64,000 nt of DNA. It comes from Macrostomum lignano (Eukaryota). The notes beneath the pieces were generated by a model. It was given only the letters and a program-made list of their open reading frames with translations, did no database searches and was not told the origin of the DNA. The stretch is taken from NCBI GenBank assembly GCA_002269645.1, contig NIVC01000280.1, forward strand, positions 620,001-684,000, written 5' to 3'. Of the stretch, positions 23,294-48,167 are shown piece after piece; position 1 is the first letter of the stretch, and each line of letters starts with the position of its first letter. The position numbers and the translations under genes were made by a program.

Positions 23294-27491
<4,198 letters not shown>

Positions 27492-27519
27492 CTGAAGCGA
27501 GAAATACTGCGATAATGCG

Positions 27520-27910
27520 GCTCCCTACTATGTTAATGGGGCTCCGTACTGTGTTAATGGGGTTCCCTACTGTCTTAATGGGGTTCCCTACTGTGTCAAT
27601 TGGACTCCCTACTGTGTTAATGGGGCTCCCTACTGTGTCAATGGGGCTCCCTACTGTGTTAATGGGGCTCCCTACTGTGTCAATGGGGCTCCCTACTGTG
27701 TTAATGGGGCTCCCTACTGTGTTAATGGGGTTCCCTACTGTGTTAATGGGGCTCCCTACTGTGTTAATGGGGCTCCCTACTGTGTTAATGGGGCTCCCTA
27801 CTGTGTTAATGGGGCTCCCTACTGTGTTAATGGGGCTCCGTACTGTGTTAATGGGGCTCCGTACTGTGTTAATGGGGTTCCCTACTGTCTTAATGGGGTT
27901 CCCTACTGTG
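27520..27910. repeat. 21-bp minisatellite GGGGCTCCCTACTGTGTTAAT, just 3' of the TIKI stop
   Basis: About 18 direct copies. Confidence 0.9.
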
Positions 27911-28358
27911 TCGATATGGAGACGCCTACAGAATTTACATGTATGGCGCCTAAAATTTTGACGGCACCAAATGACTTTCTTTACAGGCATATAAAATTCA
28001 TGTACAGTTTCCAATCAAACAATCATTCTTTATCACATTTTCCATGAGAAAACATTAACTGCTGTATATAAATAAAGCAAACTTGCTGTAGATAAAGTTT
28101 TCCAAGTGTTGGATTTTTCATTGTCTCTTTTCTGCGCTTGCTACTTAAAGTAGCTAAAATATGCGCACAAGTTCTTGTAGTTTAAATCTGTACACTGCAC
28201 TGTACACCTGGCTCTGGCCTTATCTGCGAGTCAATTTTACAGCCGGCCTGCGCTATCTTACGGCGAGTAGGCAGGTGAAAAGCCTGCAGTTCAGTTTAAG
28301 CAGAGCTCCTACAGTTGCTCAGCTCGGGTGAGTTTTATGCCGAATACCAGAACAGAAG

Positions 28359-31300
28359 ATGCTGCCGCAGCACAGCTACTACAGCGACTACCGCTACGCT
28401 CCGGACGAAATCCCGCTGGAGGAGTTCGTCCTACCGGCCTCGCCTTCAGAGCTGGCCGGCGCGCTGGCCGACTGCGGAATTCCCACGCCGGACAGGCTGC
28501 AGCAGCTTCAGCGAAGCCGCGGCCAGCCGCCTCTGACGTCGCCGACCTCCGCCCAGCAGAAGCCGCAGCCGTTCCCGCCCAGCCGGCTGAAGTCCGAACT
28601 GCTGGAGCCGGCCAGGTACGAGGCCGGCCTGGCCAGGATTCGAACTCTCGACCTTCAATCCGGTTCGGACTTGGCCGGCCTCTGCCGTCGCCTCTTTGCT
28701 GATTGTCCGGAAGATCTGGACCGGACAGTGGCCGCTTTCGGACTCGTCTGCCGTCTGGCCGAGCGGCCCCGAGAGCTGCATCGGCTGCCCTGCCTGGCCG
28801 ATCGGGCGGCCGGCCGGCCAGACTGGCAGTCCGAGGTGTTCGAGGCGGTCATGAGGTGAGGAGCGTCTGTTCTGTTGTGGCGCCAAAATCCCTTACTGAA
28901 GTTGTTGTGGCGCCGAAATCTTCATTTACTGAAGTTGTTGTGGCACCGAAATCTTCATTTACTGAAGTTGTTGTGGCGCCGAAATCTTCATTTACTGTAG
29001 TTGTTGTGATGCCAAACTGTAGTTGTTATGGCACCGAAATCTTCATTTACTGTAGTTGTTGTGGCGCCGAAATCTTCATTTACTGTAGTTGTTGTGATGC
29101 CAAACTGTAGTTGTTGTGGCACCGAAATCTTCATTTACTGTAGTTGTTGTGGCGCCGAAATCTTCATTTACTGTAGTTGTTGTGACGCCAAACTGTAGTT
29201 GTTATGGCACCGAAATCTTCATTTACTGTAGTTGTTGTGACGCCAAACTGTAGTTGTTATGGCGCCGAAATAACTTACTGTAGTTGTTGTGACGCCAAAC
29301 TGTAGTTGTTATGGCGCCGAAATAACTTACTGTAGTTGTTGTGGCGGCAAACTGTAGTTGTTGTGGCGCCGAAATAACTTACCGTAGTTGTTGTGGCGCC
29401 GAAATAACTTACTTGTAGTTGTTGTGGCGCGAAAATCATTCACTGTAGTTGCTGTGGCGCTAAAATGATTTGTTCTCAGAAGAGTTCTCAATTCTTTATC
29501 ACATTCCTACTCAGCCTCAGCGGAGTTCCCTGCCAGCGCCTGGAGGGCCTCAAAAAGGGCGCCAACTATGCCACCGGCCATCGGTCGCACGTCGGCGGCG
29601 CCTGGTTTGCCTGCTTCGTCGACGGCGAGTGGCGCCACGTCGATGCCATCTGGGGCTCGGCGGGCCTCCCGCTGGCGGCCGACGCTGAGGCCTCGGAGGC
29701 CGCCGTGGCCGCCGCGGCGGTGCCCCAGCGGAACGACTTCTTCTTCCTGACTGACCCGGCCCGGCTGGCCTTCTCACACCATCCGCTGCTGCCGGAGGGC
29801 GCCGGACCTGACTGGCAGCTGCTGGCCCGGCCGCTCAGCCTCGACGAGTTTCACCGGCTGCCGGCCTTCTTCGATGGCAACCGGGCCGCCATGGGGGTCT
29901 GCGGACTGCGGCCGGTCAACTGCCCGCTGTGCGTCATCCCCTGCCAGGGAGGAGTGGCCGACCTGCTGCTGCAGGAGACCGGCGCGGGGCGGTATCGGTA
30001 CATTATGCAGGTACCTGCTCACTCACTCACTCACTCACTCACTCACTCACTCACTCACTCACTCACTCATTCACTCACTCACTCACTCACTAACTCACTC
30101 ACTCACTCACTCACTCACTCACTCACTCACTCACTCACTCACTCACTCACTCACTCACTCTCTCACTCACTCTCTCACTCACTCACTCACTCACTCACTC
30201 ACTCACTCACTCACTCACTCACTCACTCACTCACTCACTCACTCACTCACTCACTCACTCACTCATGAACTCACTCACTCATGAACTCACTCACTCATGA
30301 ACTCACTCACTCATGAACTCATGAACTCACTCATGAACTCACTCACTCACTCACTCACTTACTTACTCTCTCACTCATGAACTCACTCATGAACTCACTC
30401 ATGAACTCACTCACTTACTTACTCTCTCACTCATGAACTCACTCATGAACTCACTCACTTACTTACTCTCTCACTCATGAACTCACTCATGAACTCACTC
30501 ATGAACTCACTCACTTACTTACTCTCTCACTCATGAACTCACTCATGAACTCACTCACTTACTTACTCTCTCACTCATGAACTCACTCATGAACTCACTC
30601 ATGAACTCACTCACGCACCCAAGGCCAAGCAGTTGGGCAGCAGAAACTCCGGCAGCACTCCGGTAGCCGGCGCCGCAGTCAGCAAGCCGATCCGACTGGC
30701 CAGCGGTCGAGTCTGTCTGAAATTCCTCGCCCCCCAAGCCGGCCGCTTCGAACTTCGAGTTGGAATTCAACGCGGACCGGACTGGCTCACTGAGCACTTC
30801 GCAGCCTACGTGGTTCACTGCCCGGCCGCGGCACCGGAGCCGGCCAATTTTCCGGCCGGCCAGCTGGCCGAGTTTGGCCTGACGGAGGAGGCCGAGCTCG
30901 AGGGAGTTCAGCTGATGGGCTGTCAACCGGAAGAGGCGGAAGCGGCGACCCTGGAGGCTGAGGATGGCGAGGCAGCTTGGCTATTGACCTCTACGAATCC
31001 GCTGGGTGCGACTTGTGACTCATCAGTTCTAGATTGTACATTCGATGACTCATCAGTTCTAGATTGTACATTCGATGACTCATCAGTTCTAGATTGTACA
31101 TTCGATGACTCATCAGTTCTAGATTGTACATTCGATGACTTATCAGTTCTAGATTGTACATTCGATGACTCATCAGTTATAGATTGTACATTCGATGACT
31201 CACCAGTTCTAGATTGTACATTCGTTGACTCATCAGTTTTAGATTGTACATTCTATGACTCATTAGTTCTGGGGTGTGCATTATATGACTCATTAGTTCT

Positions 31301-34300
31301 GGGGTGTGCATTCTATGACTCATTAACTCTGAAGTGTACATTTTACAGATGAGACTCATCAGTTATAAAGTGTAAATTTCTATGACTCATCGACTCATCC
31401 GCCATGCTCTCACTTAAACTACACAGGAGACAATCCCGACGCTCCCCTACCCTGCTGCGTCACATTCGGCGGCGACGTCGACAGTCCGACTGACACCGGC
31501 GACGGCCTCAAGCGGCATGTTCTACAGTGGTCGGAGCGCGCTGGCCGAGACCGCCGCTTTCGATTTCTGGCCCCTCGCAGCGGCTGGTTCGCCGTGACCA
31601 TCTGGCGTGACGCCGCCAGGCTGCGACCGCTCTGCGAGCTGCTGCTGGTCGCCGACACGGCCGCCTCCGGTGCTCACCTCGGCCTGCCCGGCTGCGACTC
31701 GCTGCTCGGCTGGCCCACCAACGTCGACAACCAGCGGCAGCGACGCCTCGGAAGGAGACGCCTGACCGACGAAATCCAGCTGAAGTCGCCGACGCTTCCC
31801 GGAGGCGGTGGGGAGCCGTGCCTGAGCCTGCGGCACGAGGCCGAGCTGACGCTGCTGTTCAGAACGCAGGGCCGCTACGTGGCTCGGGCGATCCTACAGC
31901 GACTGCGGCCTGGCGACCTGCTGGCAGAGCCGCTGAGCAGCTTCGTCATGGTCAACGGCGCGCCCGAAGGATTTCAGGTTCGGCAAATCAAGTACACGAT
32001 TTCATAAGACTCGCTTTGCAAGATCCCCCTGCCAACTACAATGACTTGTCTCCGCCTGCCTCTCCAGGTGCACATCCGTTTCCCCCAGCCGGGCAACTAC
32101 CTGCTCGACATCCGGGTTCTGCGACGACGCGACGAAGTCGACGCCAGCGCGGATGTGGCGGCGCAGACGGAGACGGAGGTGCAACAACCGCTGTGCCTGC
32201 TCCTGCTGCGCTCACTGTGCACCACCTTGGCCTCTACAGCCGCCTTCCCGCGAGTCCTCGATTCGGCCGCGGCCAGCGACTTCCAGCTGCTTGAGCCGCT
32301 GAATCGTCGAGTGTCGAGCTCGGAGCGGCCCACCGTCATCCGTCTGGCGTCGCTGGAGCCGTCGTCAGAGCGTCGGAGCCTCCTGGCGCTAGTCGTGGAG
32401 GACAGGGGCGGGCCGGCATGGCGACTGCCGTTCGAAGCGGCGGATCCGGCCGGTCTGAGCAGCCTGCGACTGGATCAGGAGGCCAGCAACTCGGCCAGCA
32501 GGCGACGGAGTCTGAAGGTGGTGACACGAACCGCTGGCGACACCGACCGGGAGGTGCCGCTGCTGGCCTTCGAGCTGCTGCCCGAAGCCGGCGCCGAAGC
32601 TGTCGTGGAGGGTGAAGGCGCGGCGGCGCGTCGGGCGAGCTTGGAACTGGCGCGCAGCGAGTCGCGGCGCCGTTGGCAGCGCGAGAATTGGCGCCGAGCG
32701 GCCGTCGACGGACTTGAGCCGCTGGCGTGGGATGCCGAACAGTGGGAGCGACGGACGGCCGAGGCGCTGGCCGAGCAGCGGGCGAATCGGGCGGCCGAAC
32801 TCGAACAGAGAAATCGGGAGCTCGGTGAGACCTCGACAGATTCCGAATTCCCCATTCCGAATTCAGGGTTTAATAGCCCATTTTGTCCCACTAGCAATTT
32901 GTTAGAATTCATCATTTAAATTTCAGAAGCGAAGCGCCTCCAGGACCAGTTGGTCAGCCTAGTGGAGGCGGCGTTCCCGAATGTGCTCAATCGGAACGAA
33001 CTTGTCGGGTGAGATTCGCAGCTGTATCAGCCTTAGAAACGTGTGGGGGGCATTTTCTCTCTTTCTGTTATTGACAAAAACTGGAGGCCCTCACTAAGTT
33101 TATGTACCGGAAGCATATGGCCTGGAAACTTGAAAGCTATTTTTATTAGGACGAATCATCGGAAACCGGAAGTCAATAATCCTGGATCAAGTAAAACAGA
33201 AGTCAGTGATCCCAGATCTGCTAAACCGGAAGTTAGTGATTCGGATCTGCAAAACCGGAAGTTAGTGATCCCGGATCTGCTAAACCGGAAGTTAGTGATC
33301 CCGGTTCTGCTAAACCGGAAGTTAGTGATCCTGGTTCTGCTAAACTGGAAGTTAGTGATCCCGGTTCTGCTAAACCGGAAGTTAGTGATCCTGGTTCTGC
33401 TAAACTGGAAGTTAGTGATCCCGGATCTGCTAAACCGGAAGTTAGTGATCCCGGTTCTGCTAAACCGAAACTCAGTGATCCCACATAAAGTGAATTGGAA
33501 GTTAATAGTACCAGATCAAGTGAACCGGAAGTTAGTGATCCCGGATTGCTTAACCGACAGTCAGTGTGATCCTGGATCACGCGAACTCGAATCATGAAGA
33601 AAAGCTATTGAGCAAACAAAAGCAACAACGATTGCTCCAACCGACAGAGCCATCGAGTCGGCCGACTCGAGCTCGGATCGGGGCGCCACAGAATCGGCGC
33701 TGGACGAGCTGGTGGCGCAGCGCCGGCTGTTCATGCGGCCGGTGCCCGGCGGCACAGCCTACCTGCTGCAGGAGGAGCAGCCGGAAGGTAGCGAAATTTC
33801 TAGAAGCAGCAAAATCGGCAACAAGAAGCTGCAACAGCCGTCGCAGTCAGAGAGCGGCGCGGACCGCTGGAGCATGGGCCGGGTTGTCAGCTTCAACCGG
33901 GCCAACTTCGCCGACCTGCAGCTGCTGCGGCGGGCCCGACCAACCGTTGCCATGGTAACCAGGCTGATGTGCGAGAAGCGGGCGCTGGACGCGGTGACGC
34001 TGGACAAGGAGTCCTTCGTACAGTACGAGACCCGCGGCGGCGGCCGGGACTCGCACGTGTACACCCTGGGCCGCATTGGGAGGCGTCGTGTGGTCAGCAC
34101 CAAGCTGCCGGCGGTTGTTGGCTCGCCCGACGGCCTCCAGGCTCGGGTCGCCTGTGGAAACGTCGTCACCCGCCTGCTGGGCGTCTTCCAGGACGTCGAG
34201 CATCTCCTGTTGGTTGGCGTCGGCGGTTCCCCGTCCGGCGCCTGCCGACTCGGCGACGTCTTTATCGGCGATGGGGACGCTGGCGACGTCGGTGGAGACT

Positions 34301-34773
34301 ACTTGGACGTCGCCAGAGGGCGCAGCTGGCGGTCTGTGGATCGGCGCCTCCTGACCGCCGCGCGAGCAGCCGCTGAACCCGTCGAGGACAAAGCAGAGGA
34401 GGCCATCAACTGGACGTCCATCTTGGAGTCACTGGCCGCGGAGGCGCCAGCGTTCGCTCGGCCGCCGAGGACCACCGTCGCTGCGCCGAATGTCGCTTTC
34501 GGCGCCGTGTCCTGCGGCGCGCTGTCCGGCGCCGCCGACCGGCTGGCCTCGACCACAACCTCGAAGGTGATCGGAGCGGACGCCGGATTCGACGAAGTGC
34601 TGGAGTCGGCGTTAGGCAGCCGCTGCGACTCCTTCCTGCTGATCCGGGGCTGCGCGGACTCGCACACAGGAGAGCAGGGCCTGCACTGGCAGCCGTTTGC
34701 CGCCCTGGCCGCCGCCTGCTTTGCCGAGGCTGCGGTGCGGCGGCTGCACGGGACTACTGACTACGTAGTATAG
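28359..34773 (+). CDS. KY/hillarin-like transglutaminase-fold protein with Ig-like repeats, coiled coil, winged-helix-like segment and C-terminal nucleoside-phosphorylase (PNP_UDP-like) domain; exons 28359-28855, 29515-30010, 30624-31005, 31427-31977, 32068-32824, 32927-33008, 33648-34773 (~1296 aa)
   Basis: KY/hillarin motifs: GVPCQRLEGLKKG, AWFACFVDGEWRHVDAIWG, NDFFFLTDP, DWQLLARPLSLDEF, and repeated F.AP..GRF.L / FPQPGNYLLDI units. PNP-like motifs: PTVAMVT..CEKRALD, NVYTLG-like HVYTLGRIG, LVGVGG, RLGDV, LIRGCAD. The 3891-nt exon sum is in frame. The last acceptor (33647) is the weakest link. Confidence 0.72.
28876..29462. repeat. Degenerate 20-33-bp minisatellite (TGTAGTTGTTGTGGCGCCGAAATC...), KY-like intron 1
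   Basis: Tandem units start about 20 nt after the donor. Confidence 0.9.
30017..30615. repeat. (CTCA)n microsatellite with ATGAA variants, KY-like intron 2
   Basis: Fills almost the whole intron 30011-30623. Confidence 0.95.
31014..31392. repeat. 30-bp minisatellite GATGACTCATCAGTTCTAGATTGTACATTC, KY-like intron 3
   Basis: About 12 copies, 11 of which retain TGACTCA. Confidence 0.9.
33160..33545. repeat. 30-bp minisatellite GATCCCGGATCTGCTAAACCGGAAGTTAGT, KY-like intron 6
   Basis: About 12 copies, 8 of which contain ACCGGAAGT. Confidence 0.9.
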
Positions 34774-40733: not shown

Positions 40734-42815
40734 TCACTTTTGATCTACGGAAATATCCAGGGTAGGGTTCAAGTTCAGCCGCCGTCGCTGTCGTCGCTGC
40801 GTCATCAGCGCGACGTCCAGCGCGCACAGACAGACGAAGCCGACGAAGGTGGACGCGCCGAGCACGCAGAATGACAGCTGGTAAGTGTCCGTGACGTCCT
40901 TCAGCGCGCCCGCTGTCGGCGGTCCGACGGCCACGCCGAAGCCGAAGCAGAGGATCAGCAGGCCGATGCCGGAGCGGGACCGCTCCCTGCCGATCAGGTC
41001 AATCAGCATGCAGTACAACTGGCTCATGAACAGCCCGGAGGTCAGGCCGAACGCTCCCGAGATCAGGATGAACGGTATTAAATTTTGCATGAAGGCGAAG
41101 GCTGTGATGCTGGAGGCGGTGAGCAGCATGCCGAGTGTCCAGATGCGCCTTCGATGCGGCACCAGGTGGGGGATGTCGAAGAACAGCCCCACTGAGAATC
41201 TGGACACAGTGTCGCAGGCGCCTGGGCAGAAAATGTGCGTAATTTTTAATTTAATAATATGATGGTAAATTTGCAGAAATAGAAAGAAATAAAAAGAAAT
41301 AGTTATTTCTGCACTAAAAAACGGCACCCAAAACAGTAAATTTTCACCGCAACGTCCTACTGCAGAAAGAATCCTGCTTACTAAACCATAAGTCCCGCAT
41401 GGACTTTCGAATCTTCGATCGCCTTTGGGTTATAGGAATTAAGTACATTTACATCAAGTACACCAATACATTTGGACGAGCATCGAATGTTCACCGAATC
41501 TATAATACGAGCATAATATCGAAGGCAAGTCGGACATAGATCATACATCGCGCATTTTACAGCTTGTCAGTGCAGAACTGCGCGTCTAGTGCAGTTAATT
41601 AGAACTCTCCTATTTCCGTAGTGTGTTTTGGCGAAACCCGTCTTCAAAACGAAGTATGCATAGTTAATAAGTACTTGATGCGAACCTACCGGATATGGAT
41701 ATGAGCAGAACAGATGTCATGTCGTCCAGACCGCGAAGCTGCGCATGGTGCGGCAGGATCACCGCCACGGACTTGAAGCCCGACGAGATGAACAGAGTGG
41801 CGGCGGCCAGCAAGCAGAAGTACGGATTGAGGAACAGCTTCAGATCGAAGTTGGCCCACAGCTCCATGCAGAAGCCCCGACCGCTTCGCTCCAGGGACGT
41901 CCTTGACTTGATCGTTGTCATGGATTGGCCCAGGACTTTCTCACCGGTGGAATCCTTGGAGTTTTTGTTTTCAGCGGTTTCACTCTGACCTGCTGTATCG
42001 ATGAGTGCCTCAGAAGTCGCGTCTGCAGCCTCCGCCTCGAGCGCTCCATTTGCTGACTTCTTCCCAGCAGGCAGCGGGTAAAGCAGAGCGCCGCACACCA
42101 CCAGATTGAGCGACAGGCCGCTCAGAATGAGCATACAGCCGCGGAATGAGTACACCTGGATGAGGTACTGGGTGAGCAGAGGCAGCACGAAGCTGCCCAC
42201 TCCGGTGCCCGCGGTCGCCAAGCCGAGGGCGGTCGCCTTGCGTCGGCTGAAGTAGTCGTTGACAGCCAAGAGGCCAGAAGTGTAGGCGAGGCCGTTGCCG
42301 ACTCCCGTCATGCAGCCGAGGGTCAGGTAGATGAGCGACAGACTGCGGCAGAACGAGCTCAGCAGCATGCCGAGGAAGGAGGTGACGCCACCAGCCATCA
42401 TGACCCTGCGGCAGCCAAAATACTTGCAGAGAACGCCGGTAATGGGGCCTGAAAGTCATCGGTGTAAACATTTTTGCTGCTGGGTGACTCAGAAACTGAA
42501 TAACTCACGTTGTGTGCCAGACAAATGCAATACAAGCTCTAGATCAGTCTTCTCTGAAGTCTCTTAAAATCTGTAATCTGATCATTTTCGCGGAAACGCA
42601 ACTTGAACCTTGCACTCACCGCTCATGAACCTGGAAGCGAACAGCAAAGCGCTGAAGCCGGCAGTGGAGGCAGAAGACTGCTGCAGCTCTTTGAGGATCT
42701 CCCTGTAGAACACCCCAGACGCCCTGTCGAGCCCGCCGGCCAGAATGTGCATGCAGTGACCCGCCAGCAGCACCATCCAGCCCCAGCCACCGTCCGGTGC
42801 TGCACTTTGAGACAT
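40734..42815 (-). CDS. Monocarboxylate transporter (SLC16/MFS), paralogue 1; exons 42815-42620, 42448-41690, 41221-40734 (480 aa)
   Basis: Carries the SLC16 signature [39 protein letters not shown] and GPPTAGAL.D, with about 12 hydrophobic segments. Introns are phase 1/1 GT-AG. Confidence 0.92.
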
Positions 42816-44975: not shown

Positions 44976-47900
44976 TCAGGTAGCGATCTCAACAGTCGTG
45001 GCTTCTGGATTCGACAATCGTTGACGCCGACCCCGCAGCAGCAGTACGACGTCCAGCACGCACAGGCAGACGAAGCCAGCGAAAGTGGCCGCGCCGAGGG
45101 CACAGAACGACAGCTTATAGGAGCCGCTGATGTCCTTGATTGCCCCAGCCAGAGGCGGCCCGATCGCCACGCCGACACCGCGGCAGAGGATCAGCAGGCC
45201 GATGCCGGTTCGGCAGCGCTCCCGGCCGATCAGGTCGCCAAGCACGCAGTACAGCTGGCTGACGAACAGCCCGGAGGTCAGGCCGAACGCAACCGACACG
45301 AGCACAAACGGAGCCAGGCTGTGCATGAAGGCGAAGGCTGCGATGCTGGAGGCGGTGAGCAGCATGCCGAGTGTCCAGATGCGCCTGCGGTGCGGCACCA
45401 GGCGGGACGTGTCGAACAGCAGGCCGAGGGAGAACCGCGACACCGTGTCGCAGGCGCCTGCGGATCGGTGCGTGAGAGGAGCTATCCGTCCTTTCCTGGA
45501 CACTGCATGATCACTAACAGCTACTAGAACAACTCCAGTCTCTTTGGACACACCGCCGTAATCCTATAGGCACCTCATTGCTTATGCAGACATCCACTGT
45601 AATTTAAACATCGCAAATAGTTTCAACATTAATAATTAATTTTTGCAGGAAATTTTTGGGTGCTCTCCTTCAGCGACACCGTCCCGAAACCAGCGCTGAG
45701 GCAATTCTGCCCATTTCGCTGACTCCAAAGCACATACAAGCGCGCCAGTGCTGTACGCAGGCTCACAAAGGGTGTACAGAGGCCCTGAATTTCTAGATTC
45801 GTCAGGCATGTGCAAACCGTGTCTCGGGGCCTGGCCCTGGTGGCTGTGAATCGCACGACAACCCGCCAAGGACTACGATCAAGTAAAAGGACGGGAAACC
45901 CCTGGCCTTGGTGGCTGTGAGTCGCACGACAACCCGCCAAGGACTACGATCAATTAAAAGGACGGGAAACCTCGTTTCTTAGAAAATTTTAGGAGCAGGA
46001 GGCAGACCCAATGTTCATCTTTTGATATGTTTTGCCTTTCGTATAGCTCCATTGATATTCATAGAGCTTTTCGTTTAGAAAATTAGGATTCTGTGTCAAT
46101 TTTTTATTCTACGTACAATTGTACATGTCCTGTGCATAAGAACCATTAACATGACACGGCTCGGCTCGTCGGTTTTATGAATCTATTTTATCATTCTTAG
46201 CTGACTGTGTAACAATATGTGTAACAGAGATTATAAAATAGATTTAAAAAATCAACGAGTCGAGCTGTGCCATGCATTTACATCGCCGTTGTCAGCACTC
46301 GGATCAACCAGTGGGTGGCTTCAAAGCCCAGGGAGAGGTGGGCAATCGCCCCAGACTGCCGGCAATCCCGCGCGGCTGTCCCCTGTCCTTCCTCCGCCCT
46401 GCGCAGGGCCCTGCTTGGACTCAACCGCAGGGACATCAGGGCGGTGACCATGGCCCTCTCGGGTCATGGCTGTTTTGCCAGGCATCGTCACCTCCATGGA
46501 AAAATCCGCAGTGAGGGATGCCCATTCTGCCTATCCGGTGTCGAGAATGCGAGCACTTTATCTGTGAATGCCCCGCCTTTACTCAGGACAGGCTCACCTA
46601 CCTCGGCCCAAACCCGGACCTCTCCGAGGTTTTCAGGCCCGAGAACCTCTGCTAGCTCGTCCGCTACCTAAGGACTACCGGGCGAGCGACAATCCACCTC
46701 CTGGACTCTCCGGAGGGGGACCGCACTGCGGACACCGGCACCACCGGAACTCCCTGCGCGACACCGCAGCACTAGCTGCCCGTGGTTGCCAGGGGTTAGC
46801 AAAATGGGCGGCAACGCCTCCTCGCTGCTTCCGGACGCACGGAGCCCCCTGCAGCTCAGTCAAGTAAGTGCCATGCATTTTTATGATTTTTAGGTACAGG
46901 GAATGTACGTAGTATAAAAGATGAAAGAGTATCGGAACCCACCTAAGGAACCCTAACTCTGTACACTATCTCTGTCTTGGAAGTTGGCTCTCCAAGCAGG
47001 CGTGAATCGCACGAACTCAGGGGGGTCGTGGATCGAGAGCGAGACGGCTGAGCTACCCTGCCCCCATTGCACCAGTTCAGGAAATGATTGCTTTATCCGC
47101 AGATTGCCTGCAAACAGCTCACCAGCAATGGAGATCAGCAGCACGGAGGTGGTTCTGGTCAGGCCCTTGAGCTGGCCGTGGTGCGGCAAAATCACCGCGA
47201 CAGGCTTGAAGCCGGCAGAGATGAACAAAGCCGCCAGCGCGTACACGCTGAACTGCCAGTTGAGGAACAGTTTCAGGTCGAAATTCTCCCACAACTGGAT
47301 GAAGAACCGACGACAGGGGCTCACAGGTGCAGGGTCAGCTGTTTGCAACGGCTGTGCATCAGCTGACACTGGTTGCTTGGCAGAATGTTCCTCATCGGGT
47401 TTCATTCCGTCTCCATTCTTCTCTGCGCCTTCCACTGCCCGCAGTGCCACTGACTCGGCGGGCTTTTCCTCACCGACTGCAGCCTGCGGCAGCGGGTAAA
47501 GCAGAGCGCCGCACACCACCAGATTGAGCGACAGACCGCTCAGAATGAGCATACAGCCGCGGAATGAGTACACCTGGATGAGGTACTGGGTGAGCAGAGG
47601 CAGCACGAAGCTGCCCACTCCAGTGCCCGCGGTCGCCAAGCCGAGGGCGGTCGCCTTGCGTCGGCTGAAGTAGTCGTTGACAGCCAAGAGGCCAGAAGTG
47701 TAGGCGAGGCCGTTGCCGACTCCCGTCATGAAACCAAGGGTCAGGTAGATGAGCGACAGACTGCGACAGAACGAGCTCAGCAGCACGCCGACGAAGGATA
47801 TGAGGCCTCCAGCCATCATTACTTTTCGACAGCAGAAGAACTTGCATAGTACCCCCGCTACTGGGCCTTGATAAAAATATTTTGCACGAAATACATGTAA

Positions 47901-48167
47901 AAGCATTCATACATGTACATCCCTGTCTGAGAAACGTTCACAGAGTAATAACACAGGGATTCAGATCTTTAACCCACCGCTAAGAAACCTGGAGGAAAAA
48001 AGCAGTGCAGTAAATCCAGCTGTCGATGCGGAAGACTCTTGCATGTCATAGAGAATTTCACGGTAGAAAACTCCTGTTGCTCTGTCAAGTCCGCCAGTTA
48101 AAAAGTGCATGAAGTGGACGGCTAGGACAATCATCCAGCCCCAGCCACCGTCGAGTGCTTTATCCAT
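44976..48167 (-). CDS. Monocarboxylate transporter (SLC16/MFS), paralogue 2; exons 48167-47978, 47866-47123, 45457-44976 (471 aa)
   Basis: DGGWGWMIV; same intron positions and phases as paralogue 1. Confidence 0.92.
46280..46865 (+). mobile_element. 5'-truncated, degenerate non-LTR retrotransposon (LINE) ORF2 C-terminus in MCT2 intron 2
   Basis: [25 protein letters not shown]...CPFCLSGVE is followed, after a frameshift, by [19 protein letters not shown]. This is the typical CCHC C-terminal knuckle of LINE ORF2. There is an in-frame TAG near 46650, followed by a GC-rich 3'UTR-like stretch. Confidence 0.8.

Follow-up and report, generated by a model that had tools for sequence, protein, structure and literature searches.

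A predicted lineage-specific fusion of a KY-like module with winged-helix and PNP-fold domains in the flatworm Macrostomum lignano

Proteins of the KY (kyphoscoliosis peptidase) family are associated with the cytoskeleton, and nucleosidases of the Cap17 type, built on the purine nucleoside phosphorylase (PNP) fold, have recently been proposed as immune effectors conserved from bacteria to animals. Parts related to both appear to be joined in one gene of the flatworm Macrostomum lignano. The gene lies at positions 28359-34773 of a 64,000-nucleotide stretch of assembly GCA_002269645.1 (contig NIVC01000280.1, positions 620,001 to 684,000 of the forward strand; hereafter the window), and its predicted product of 1296 residues combines a divergent KY-family module with a winged helix and a domain of the fold shared by PNP and methylthioadenosine/S-adenosylhomocysteine (MTA/SAH) nucleosidase (MTAN). 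We consider the best explanation to be one gene that arose by exon-level fusion, with a C-terminal N-glycosidase and an inactive scaffold of KY-type and immunoglobulin (Ig)-like domains that places or gates the enzyme; we give this reading as a whole a probability of roughly 0.6.

On the enzyme side, bacterial PNP domains of the Cap17-like clade, and those of a fungus and a sponge, cleave ATP and dATP, and arthropods and nematodes possess proteins, placed in the same clade, that combine a 'Z-alpha-like' domain with a Cap17-like PNP domain, among them CG12065 of Drosophila melanogaster, a protein of Apis mellifera and H14E04.2 of Caenorhabditis elegans (Rousset et al. 2023, bioRxiv 10.1101/2023.01.24.525353). 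The animal winged-helix and PNP proteins have never been characterised, and the only functional mention of CG12065 or H14E04.2 that we found in the literature is the one by Rousset et al. The window gene would illustrate, in a flatworm accessible to transgenesis, that exon shuffling can swap the input end of this family for a KY-type scaffold. It would thereby provide a natural experiment on the role of the N-terminal module, be it localisation, sensing or gating, and would place beside the animal's own stand-alone paralog another, divergent enzyme for comparison. Should the PNP domain be inactive, the gene would represent one more lineage-specific chimera in a duplicated, repeat-rich genome.

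Domain architecture of the predicted protein

The seven exons that the first-pass annotation had read as splicing in frame into about 1296 residues were recovered when the gene was rebuilt from the raw sequence. A GT donor and an AG acceptor with matching phases are present at every exon junction, and the joined exons (3891 nt) comprise 1296 codons and a TAG stop codon (34771-34773, on the forward strand like all exons below), with zero internal stops. The GC content of the exons is 0.60-0.71, versus 0.37-0.50 for the introns. The model is collinear with the deposited M. lignano protein PAA65175.1 (BOX15_Mlig026044g1), which is also 1296 residues long and differs by 25 substitutions and no gaps, with the same junctions. 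PAA65175.1 (Mlig026044.g1) is the protein of a homeologous copy of the window gene. Furthermore, the UniProt fragment P0004 begins exactly at exon 3.

Residues ~98-894 form a divergent KY-family module made up of a transglutaminase-like core, four Ig-like beta-sandwiches and a helical tail, in agreement with the KY-like core and Ig-like repeats that had been read from the letters alone. Exon 1 (28359-28855; aa 1-165 plus 2 nt) encodes a disordered N-terminus and the first half of the core, and exon 2 (29515-30010; aa 166-331) encodes the second half of the core and the start of Ig-like domain 1. Exon 3 (30624-31005; aa 332-458) and exon 4 (31427-31977; aa 459-642) cover the Ig-like beta-sandwich region, predicted to be of the KY type in exon 3, and exon 5 (32068-32824; aa 643-894) carries the last Ig-like domains, followed by a coiled-coil-like helical tail, and ends in phase 1. 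In an AlphaFold2 (AF2) model of the N-terminal part, computed from 25 sequences with a predicted local distance difference test (pLDDT) score of 73.6, an alpha/beta core is followed by beta-sandwiches at aa ~306-397, 415-534, 590-691 and 714-813 and by two long helices from aa ~823. A Foldseek search with this model ranked the Chlamydomonas central-pair protein FAP246 first, followed by the Ig arrays of titin, filamin and Dscam.

The homology of this module to the KY family is carried by phmmer matches at two distances. KY-like paralogs within M. lignano (Mlig026182/Mlig018178; P0010/P0164, P0011 and P0032 of the older annotation) were matched at E 1e-37 to 1e-58, and animal proteins of the KY family that contain Pfam Transglut_core together with three to five Ig-like_KY domains (P0039, P0092 and P0124) were matched at E ~1e-13 to 1e-20. 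Two paralogs, P0009 and P0160 (M. lignano), align from residue 5 onward. At the other end, the tail is common to paralog P0164 (GLESLPVW in P0164 versus GLEPLAW in the window), which assigns the helical tail to the KY-like parent. Among the Pfam models run on the window protein, Transglut_core gave no match, and Ig-like_KY (PF23265) scored 25.7 bits at aa 625-661 (cut-off 27), with a further partial match (E 0.012) at aa 359-408; paralog P0164 exceeds this cut-off.

The Cys-His-Asp triad of the transglutaminase/papain-like core is largely replaced. In an alignment of 78 core domains, Pro154 occupies the column of the catalytic Cys and Gly194 that of the His, and only Asp209 is kept. Other M. 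lignano paralogs likewise lack the Cys and have Gly in the His column, and several further members of the family also lack the Cys. The replacement of Cys and His argues against activity, not against homology, and the KY-type core is predicted to be an enzymatically dead pseudoenzyme, which fits the role of a scaffold.

The remaining two exons encode the C-terminal part. Exon 6 (32927-33008; 82 nt, aa 895-921) contains the end of a long helix and the first helices of the winged helix. Exon 7 (33648-34773; 1126 nt) covers the PNP region as a single exon. Its 5' part (33648-33768; aa 922-962) encodes the recognition helix and the beta-hairpin wing of an HTH_69-type domain (elements H91-103, E107-112 and E115-120 of the 454-residue segment modelled by AF2), which is followed by a disordered linker (33769-33855; aa 963-991; pLDDT below 50) and by the PNP/MTAN-fold domain (33856-34755; aa 992-1291). 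The AF2 model of aa 843-1296 (32 sequences; pLDDT 81.7, predicted template modelling score 0.81) consists of the long helix, a winged helix at aa ~897-962 arranged as helix-helix-helix-beta hairpin, the linker at aa 963-991 and an alpha/beta domain at aa 992-1291. Foldseek aligned the alpha/beta domain with MTAN structures at E 5e-10 and a target template modelling (TM) score of 0.65-0.76. Both the winged helix and the PNP/MTAN fold had been suggested by the first-pass annotation, and both are borne out by these models together with the homology described below.

By homology, the C-terminal part is assigned to a protostome family in which a winged helix-turn-helix (wHTH; Pfam HTH_69, PF22979) is combined with a PNP/MTAN-fold domain; stand-alone invertebrate proteins of this kind had been mentioned in the earlier reading, and they prove to form a large family. 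The best match is the M. lignano protein Mlig017830 (P0007, 589 aa), which aligns with aa 892-1287 at E 3e-53, whereas other members match two PNP stretches, aa ~1013-1130 (phmmer E 1e-22 to 1e-27) and aa ~1190-1290 (1e-9 to 1e-15). Members show Pfam HTH_69 followed by PNP_UDP_1, and named representatives occur in a flea, a mite, a springtail, a tardigrade, Priapulus, Caenorhabditis tropicalis, Echinococcus, Schistocephalus, Lingula, a chiton, a clam and Seison. With the flea protein as query, more than 1000 proteins were retrieved, Apis mellifera LOC551214 and proteins of several Drosophila species among them; the best 120 all carry HTH_69 and most of them also PNP_UDP_1. From the Pfam pair shared by proteins of Drosophila species, Apis mellifera and Caenorhabditis tropicalis, we infer that this is the 'Z-alpha-like + PNP' family of Rousset et al.

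The alignment with this family extends through both domains. Residues ~897-962 line up with HTH_69 in family members, and the E..AYPN motif recurs as EAAFPN in the window protein. The family alignment has 75 columns with at least 80% conservation; 57 of them, among which are all 14 invariant ones, are preserved in the window protein, versus 61-75 in other members. The kept residues include E1031, K1032, D1036, R1097, G1112-G1115, R1122, D1125, D1233 and D1259. All four PNP motifs named at the outset fall on family-conserved columns: CEKRALD supplies E1031, K1032 and D1036, GVGG corresponds to G1112-G1115, RLGDV to R1122-D1125 and IRGCAD to R1255-D1259. A profile alignment pairs the Asp in the family's RGIADY motif (D1259 of the window protein, invariant among the aligned members) with the one in the MTAN 'ISD' motif. 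D1259 (codon 34657-34659) is thus the predicted catalytic Asp, at the position of MTAN D197 and of DtcC D353, the equivalence with DtcC D353 being deduced from the shared fold.

Several further observations concern the same family. Insect wHTH-PNP proteins (P0193-P0311) are strongly conserved, with 55-60% identity between the flea and bees, beetles and flies over more than 90% of the length. In P0020, P0022 and P0025, which include the chiton and clam proteins, an N-terminal Methyltransf_FA domain (PF12248) takes the place of the usual N-terminal domain. With this third type of N-terminus, seen in molluscs, these members would constitute a second example of N-terminal module exchange in the wHTH-PNP family. 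A canonical Z-alpha reading of the winged helix was considered and set aside: the profile search matched wHTH domains of the BirA and RPC6 types, and its list contained no Z-alpha structure.

Origin of the fusion, its copies and its distribution

The two homologies meet at an exon boundary. The match to the KY-like paralogs stops at aa ~890-899, and that to the wHTH-PNP family sets in at aa ~887-898; both points correspond to the exon 5/6 boundary. Neighbour-joining on the wHTH-PNP region united the window protein, on a long branch, with Mlig017830 (176 of 200 bootstraps), and the pair adjoins two cestodes. The gene structures agree with this placement. More specifically, a phase-2 intron interrupts the winged helix at the same alignment column in both genes (checked by eye), after ...EELSK at the Mlig017830 locus (L003) and after ...NELVG in the window (intron 6), and the exon preceding the wHTH exon ends in phase 1 in both. 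The PNP region of Mlig017830 contains three more introns, versus the single 1126-nt exon in the window. The closest relative of the C-terminal half is this stand-alone M. lignano paralog. As a separate observation on that locus, L003 6001-17172 does not translate exactly to the deposited protein: residues DVNGVG of P0007 (~aa 170-175) were not found in the expected frame, which may reflect a micro-exon or a difference of annotation or assembly.

In the simplest reading, the 3' exons of a wHTH-PNP gene would have been duplicated at the DNA level behind a KY-like gene in the Macrostomum lineage and joined to it via compatible phase-1 introns. The first five exons would then stem from the KY-like gene and the last two from a duplicate of the flatworm wHTH-PNP member, and the ~170-residue N-terminal domain proper to the wHTH-PNP family would have been lost in the fusion and replaced by the KY-like module. 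We regard a lineage-specific exon-level fusion, with this architecture and origin, as highly probable.

To place the architecture among known proteins, residues 98-1296 were searched with HMMER against 1.84 billion representative proteins, which gave 625 matches at E up to 0.001, and the best 150 were re-aligned to the model. These 150 split cleanly into an N-terminal group (aa ~5-890) and a C-terminal group, and both halves are matched within these 150 by the M. lignano copies alone. In such a scan, the summed scores of its two halves should bring a true fusion close to the top; relatives above 50% identity are shown by one representative, behind which orthologs from further Macrostomum species may lie, as would be expected of an old fusion. 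The proposal that the combination is lineage-specific therefore stands within these best 150 of 625 matches. Both halves have homologs in the database at E 1e-20 to 1e-57, which makes the observation more than chance.

What is new is thus the combination of KY, wHTH and PNP parts, which is built from known modules and was seen in no other organism among these matches; it can be read equally as a new N-terminal module on the wHTH-PNP family or as a KY-like protein that gained a new C-terminal effector. The gene model as such is no novelty, since the 1296-residue product has been deposited in GenBank as a hypothetical protein. Its UniProt label is only 'Transglutaminase-like domain-containing', and a literature search for 'Mlig026044' found no paper that mentions the locus.

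Within assembly GCA_002269645.1, all seven exons recur at 97-100% identity in two further loci. Published reports describe the M. lignano genome as partly duplicated (PMC5730564; PMC10468722), and the three copies of the locus family Mlig026044 fit such a genome. One of the homeologs (L001, Mlig026044.g2) carries two 1-bp deletions, one in a C-run of exon 5 and one in exon 7 (within L001 13529-14284 and 15150-16274, corresponding to window ~32082 and ~33716), and is for this reason annotated as a truncated product of 719 residues. L001 is either affected by long-read assembly errors or a decaying copy. Compared with the intact homeolog (L002), the ratio of non-synonymous to synonymous substitution rates (dN/dS) is 0.36 for the whole gene, 0.12 for aa 895-1296 and 0.12-0.21 across the Ig-like and PNP parts, values that rest on small counts of 25 synonymous and 25 non-synonymous changes in total.

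The non-coding parts of the gene and its surroundings are rich in repeats. Minisatellite arrays nearly fill introns 1, 2, 3 and 6 (28873-29474, 30018-30618, 31016-31323 and 33163-33556, with periods of 33/55/88, (CTCA)n, 30 and 30, respectively). These introns also differ strongly in length between homeologs (659 versus 343, 613 versus 501, 421 versus 232 and 639 versus 669 nt), and introns 4 and 5 are stable. Just 5' of the gene, a 21-bp tandem repeat of ~19 copies (27505-27911) gives rise to non-gene open reading frames (ORFs) of more than 200 codons on both strands. An ATG-started ORF of 841 codons at 24057-26582 on the reverse strand was considered as a neighbouring gene and rejected: it is a 24-nt satellite that translates into (HRETGTND)n and then (SIYL)n, and it has no Pfam matches. 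Downstream, ORFs at 41667-42401 and 46956-47906 on the reverse strand match the Major Facilitator Superfamily (MFS) at E 9e-21 and 7e-25, and they probably represent exons of a single MFS transporter gene, or of two in tandem, on the strand opposite to the fusion gene.

Gene unity, predicted function and alternative explanations

The possibility that the locus holds two adjacent genes has to be considered in a trans-splicing species. A KY-like gene would then end in exon 5, a wHTH-PNP gene would start from exon 6 or 7, and the 1296-residue product would be an annotation chimera of a read-through or operon pre-mRNA. Multi-gene precursor RNAs make up ~7% of the assembled M. lignano transcripts (PMC5730564), the homology breakpoint falls on an exon boundary, and the frame would match across the two junctions by chance in about one case in nine. 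The same abundance of multi-gene precursors is the reason why the units of the assembly annotation, which were built from RNA-seq (StringTie/TACO), were broken up into genes at spliced-leader and poly(A) sites that had been mapped by experiment (PMC5730564); this pipeline nevertheless left Mlig026044.g1 as one gene of 1296 residues. Neither AATAAA nor ATTAAA occurs in introns 5 and 6, and retention of either intron would stop translation within 1 to ~31 codons. Between aa 800 and 951 there is no in-frame Met, so that a separate downstream product would miss most of the winged helix. In the AF2 model, one helix with high pLDDT spans aa 865-910, and the coiled coil reads through the exon 5/6 junction, with ELEQRNREL on one side and EAKRLQDQL on the other, as the first-pass annotation had claimed. 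Furthermore, the junctions and the 82-nt exon 6 are preserved in all three copies, P0185 (100% identity with the window sequence) and P0006, two fragments taken from a separate annotation, span the exon 5/6 and exon 6/7 junctions, and the N-terminal domain that a stand-alone wHTH-PNP gene would bring is absent from the locus. The dN/dS values against L002 given above also speak for one gene. The evidence leans clearly to a single gene, and we give the two-gene explanation only a slim chance.

For this single gene, the proposed mechanism starts from a C-terminal domain that would still act as an N-glycosidase on an adenine nucleoside or nucleotide, with precedents in ATP and dATP for the Cap17-like clade and in MTA/SAH for the nearest solved fold. 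The inactive KY/Ig-like part would be a protein-binding scaffold or a sensor. PNP-fold enzymes generally need self-association, and the long helix may serve it; KY/Ig-like part and helix together would place or gate the enzyme, a putative link of a scaffold to nucleoside or nucleotide turnover such as the first-pass annotation had proposed. By analogy with these precedents, a retained nucleosidase activity combined with a targeting or gating role of the N-terminal module is a tentative proposal, to which we assign somewhat less than even odds. An immune role is possible and unsupported, and any cytoskeletal role is putative. An extended version, in which the dead transglutaminase and the Ig-like array would sense, for example, a damaged or pathogen-modified cytoskeletal partner and switch on an ATP/dATP-degrading nucleosidase through the coiled coil, appears unlikely. 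If it were true, it would represent a new architecture of animal cell-autonomous defence or stress suicide, with a KY-type pseudoenzyme in place of the NLR, Death and Z-alpha-type inputs known so far.

A number of observations weigh against the overall reading of a fused, active and scaffolded enzyme. RNA-seq support for the 1296-residue gene is second-hand, as it comes through the annotation method. The PNP domain lacks a hairpin of ~25 residues that most family members have, Ser replaces the near-invariant Tyr after D1259, and DVFIG stands for DVVVS; the activity of the domain may thus be altered or lost. No significant wHTH or PNP match was obtained for the window protein alone in Pfam, PADLOC or NCBIfam (HTH_69 no match; PNP_UDP_1 E 0.015-0.14; PADLOC none), nor did a Protein Data Bank (PDB) sequence search with the single protein give any match, so that the family assignment relies on phmmer, the alignment and the fold. 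Strong conservation of this degree among insects would be uncommon in a supposed immune effector; it hints at a conserved cellular role, and a housekeeping role would fit it as well as an immune one. Finally, one homeolog carries the two 1-bp deletions described above, and dN/dS is ~0.7 in aa 1-331 and aa 643-894, where substitutions are few.

These points feed two alternatives in which the fusion itself is real. The PNP-fold domain could be non-catalytic and serve as a ligand-binding or oligomerisation module in a purely structural or regulatory protein. In its favour, 18 of the 75 conserved columns are changed or deleted, among them the Tyr beside the catalytic Asp, the DVVVS motif and the conserved hairpin, the tree branch is long, and the N-terminal domain is already a pseudoenzyme. 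This explanation has to accommodate, however, that the residues aligned with the MTAN catalytic Asp and with the Glu of the N-terminal motif are kept, as are the Gly-rich loop and R1122/D1125/D1233, that dN/dS is as low as 0.12 in the C-terminal part, and that the hairpin is also absent in the Lingula and Orchesella members; on balance we find it somewhat unlikely. The gene could also be a young chimera under relaxed constraint that is heading to loss and has no specific function, as the dN/dS of ~0.7 in the two N-terminal segments, the frameshifted L001 copy and the finding of the gene in one species only would suggest. Yet the 3.9-kb reading frame is open in two copies, the Ig-like and PNP parts and the gene overall show constraint, and the L001 deletion in the C-run may be a long-read assembly error. 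Moreover, identity to the closest paralog has fallen to ~35-47% (35% by BLASTP, 47% by phmmer), which means that the fusion is not recent, and we regard the young chimera as very unlikely.

Comparison with known systems

Compared with KY and hillarin, the window protein has a homologous core with the GxxKG, WxAVxVDGxWRxxD and FFLTDP...WQLL motifs, followed by an array of beta-sandwiches. It differs in that, like the other M. lignano paralogs, it has other residues in place of the catalytic Cys and His, in that Transglut_core finds no match and Ig-like_KY stays just below its cut-off, and in that a wHTH or PNP domain was found in no other KY relative. The closest solved structure to the N-terminal module is FAP246 (PDB 7n6g chain 6E, 7sqc), at Foldseek E 1e-13 and at E 1e-20 with a KY-family profile. 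Together, the profile match and the top structural match indicate that a KY-like module is present in the ciliary central apparatus. FAP246 is, however, an algal ciliary protein without a PNP domain, and only its transglutaminase-like part and some beta domains align, at 16% identity.

With the wHTH-PNP family, the window protein shares the order of wHTH, linker and PNP fold, the 57 of 75 conserved residues including the predicted catalytic Asp, and the position of the wHTH intron, as in Mlig017830. The family's conserved N-terminal domain of ~170 residues (MTP...HVAGG.H.GIVIN...FWF...FPRDY.GFIKK) is absent, and ~895 residues of KY-like module and helical tail stand in its place. For the enzyme domain itself, MTAN (PDB 3dp9, 1nc1) is the best structural match, with the 'ISD' Asp aligned to D1259, whereas identity is only 12-18%, the window domain contains large insertions, and the NCBIfam MTAN models stay far below cut-off for family members and give no match on the window protein.

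On the choice between the defensive PNP clade and the housekeeping PNP/MTAN/UDP enzymes, the PADLOC model of PN-superfamily effectors matched the family members P0017 and P0018 at E 7e-7 and 4e-6 and the window protein not at all, the NCBIfam MTAN models being equally weak on P0017 and P0018. Plasmids searched by tblastn with a family member yielded only a broken hypothetical ORF of Sinorhizobium, which has no defence context. Activity data in animals come from the sponge protein only. The window protein shares with the ATP nucleosidases Cap17 of CBASS and DtcC of Detocs, and with the tested eukaryotic domains of the sponge DDAN and the fungal NLRN, a PNP/MTAN fold with a catalytic Asp, which in the window protein is a predicted one. 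As in these systems, the putative effector stands at the end of a multidomain protein whose other parts resemble sensor or scaffold modules.

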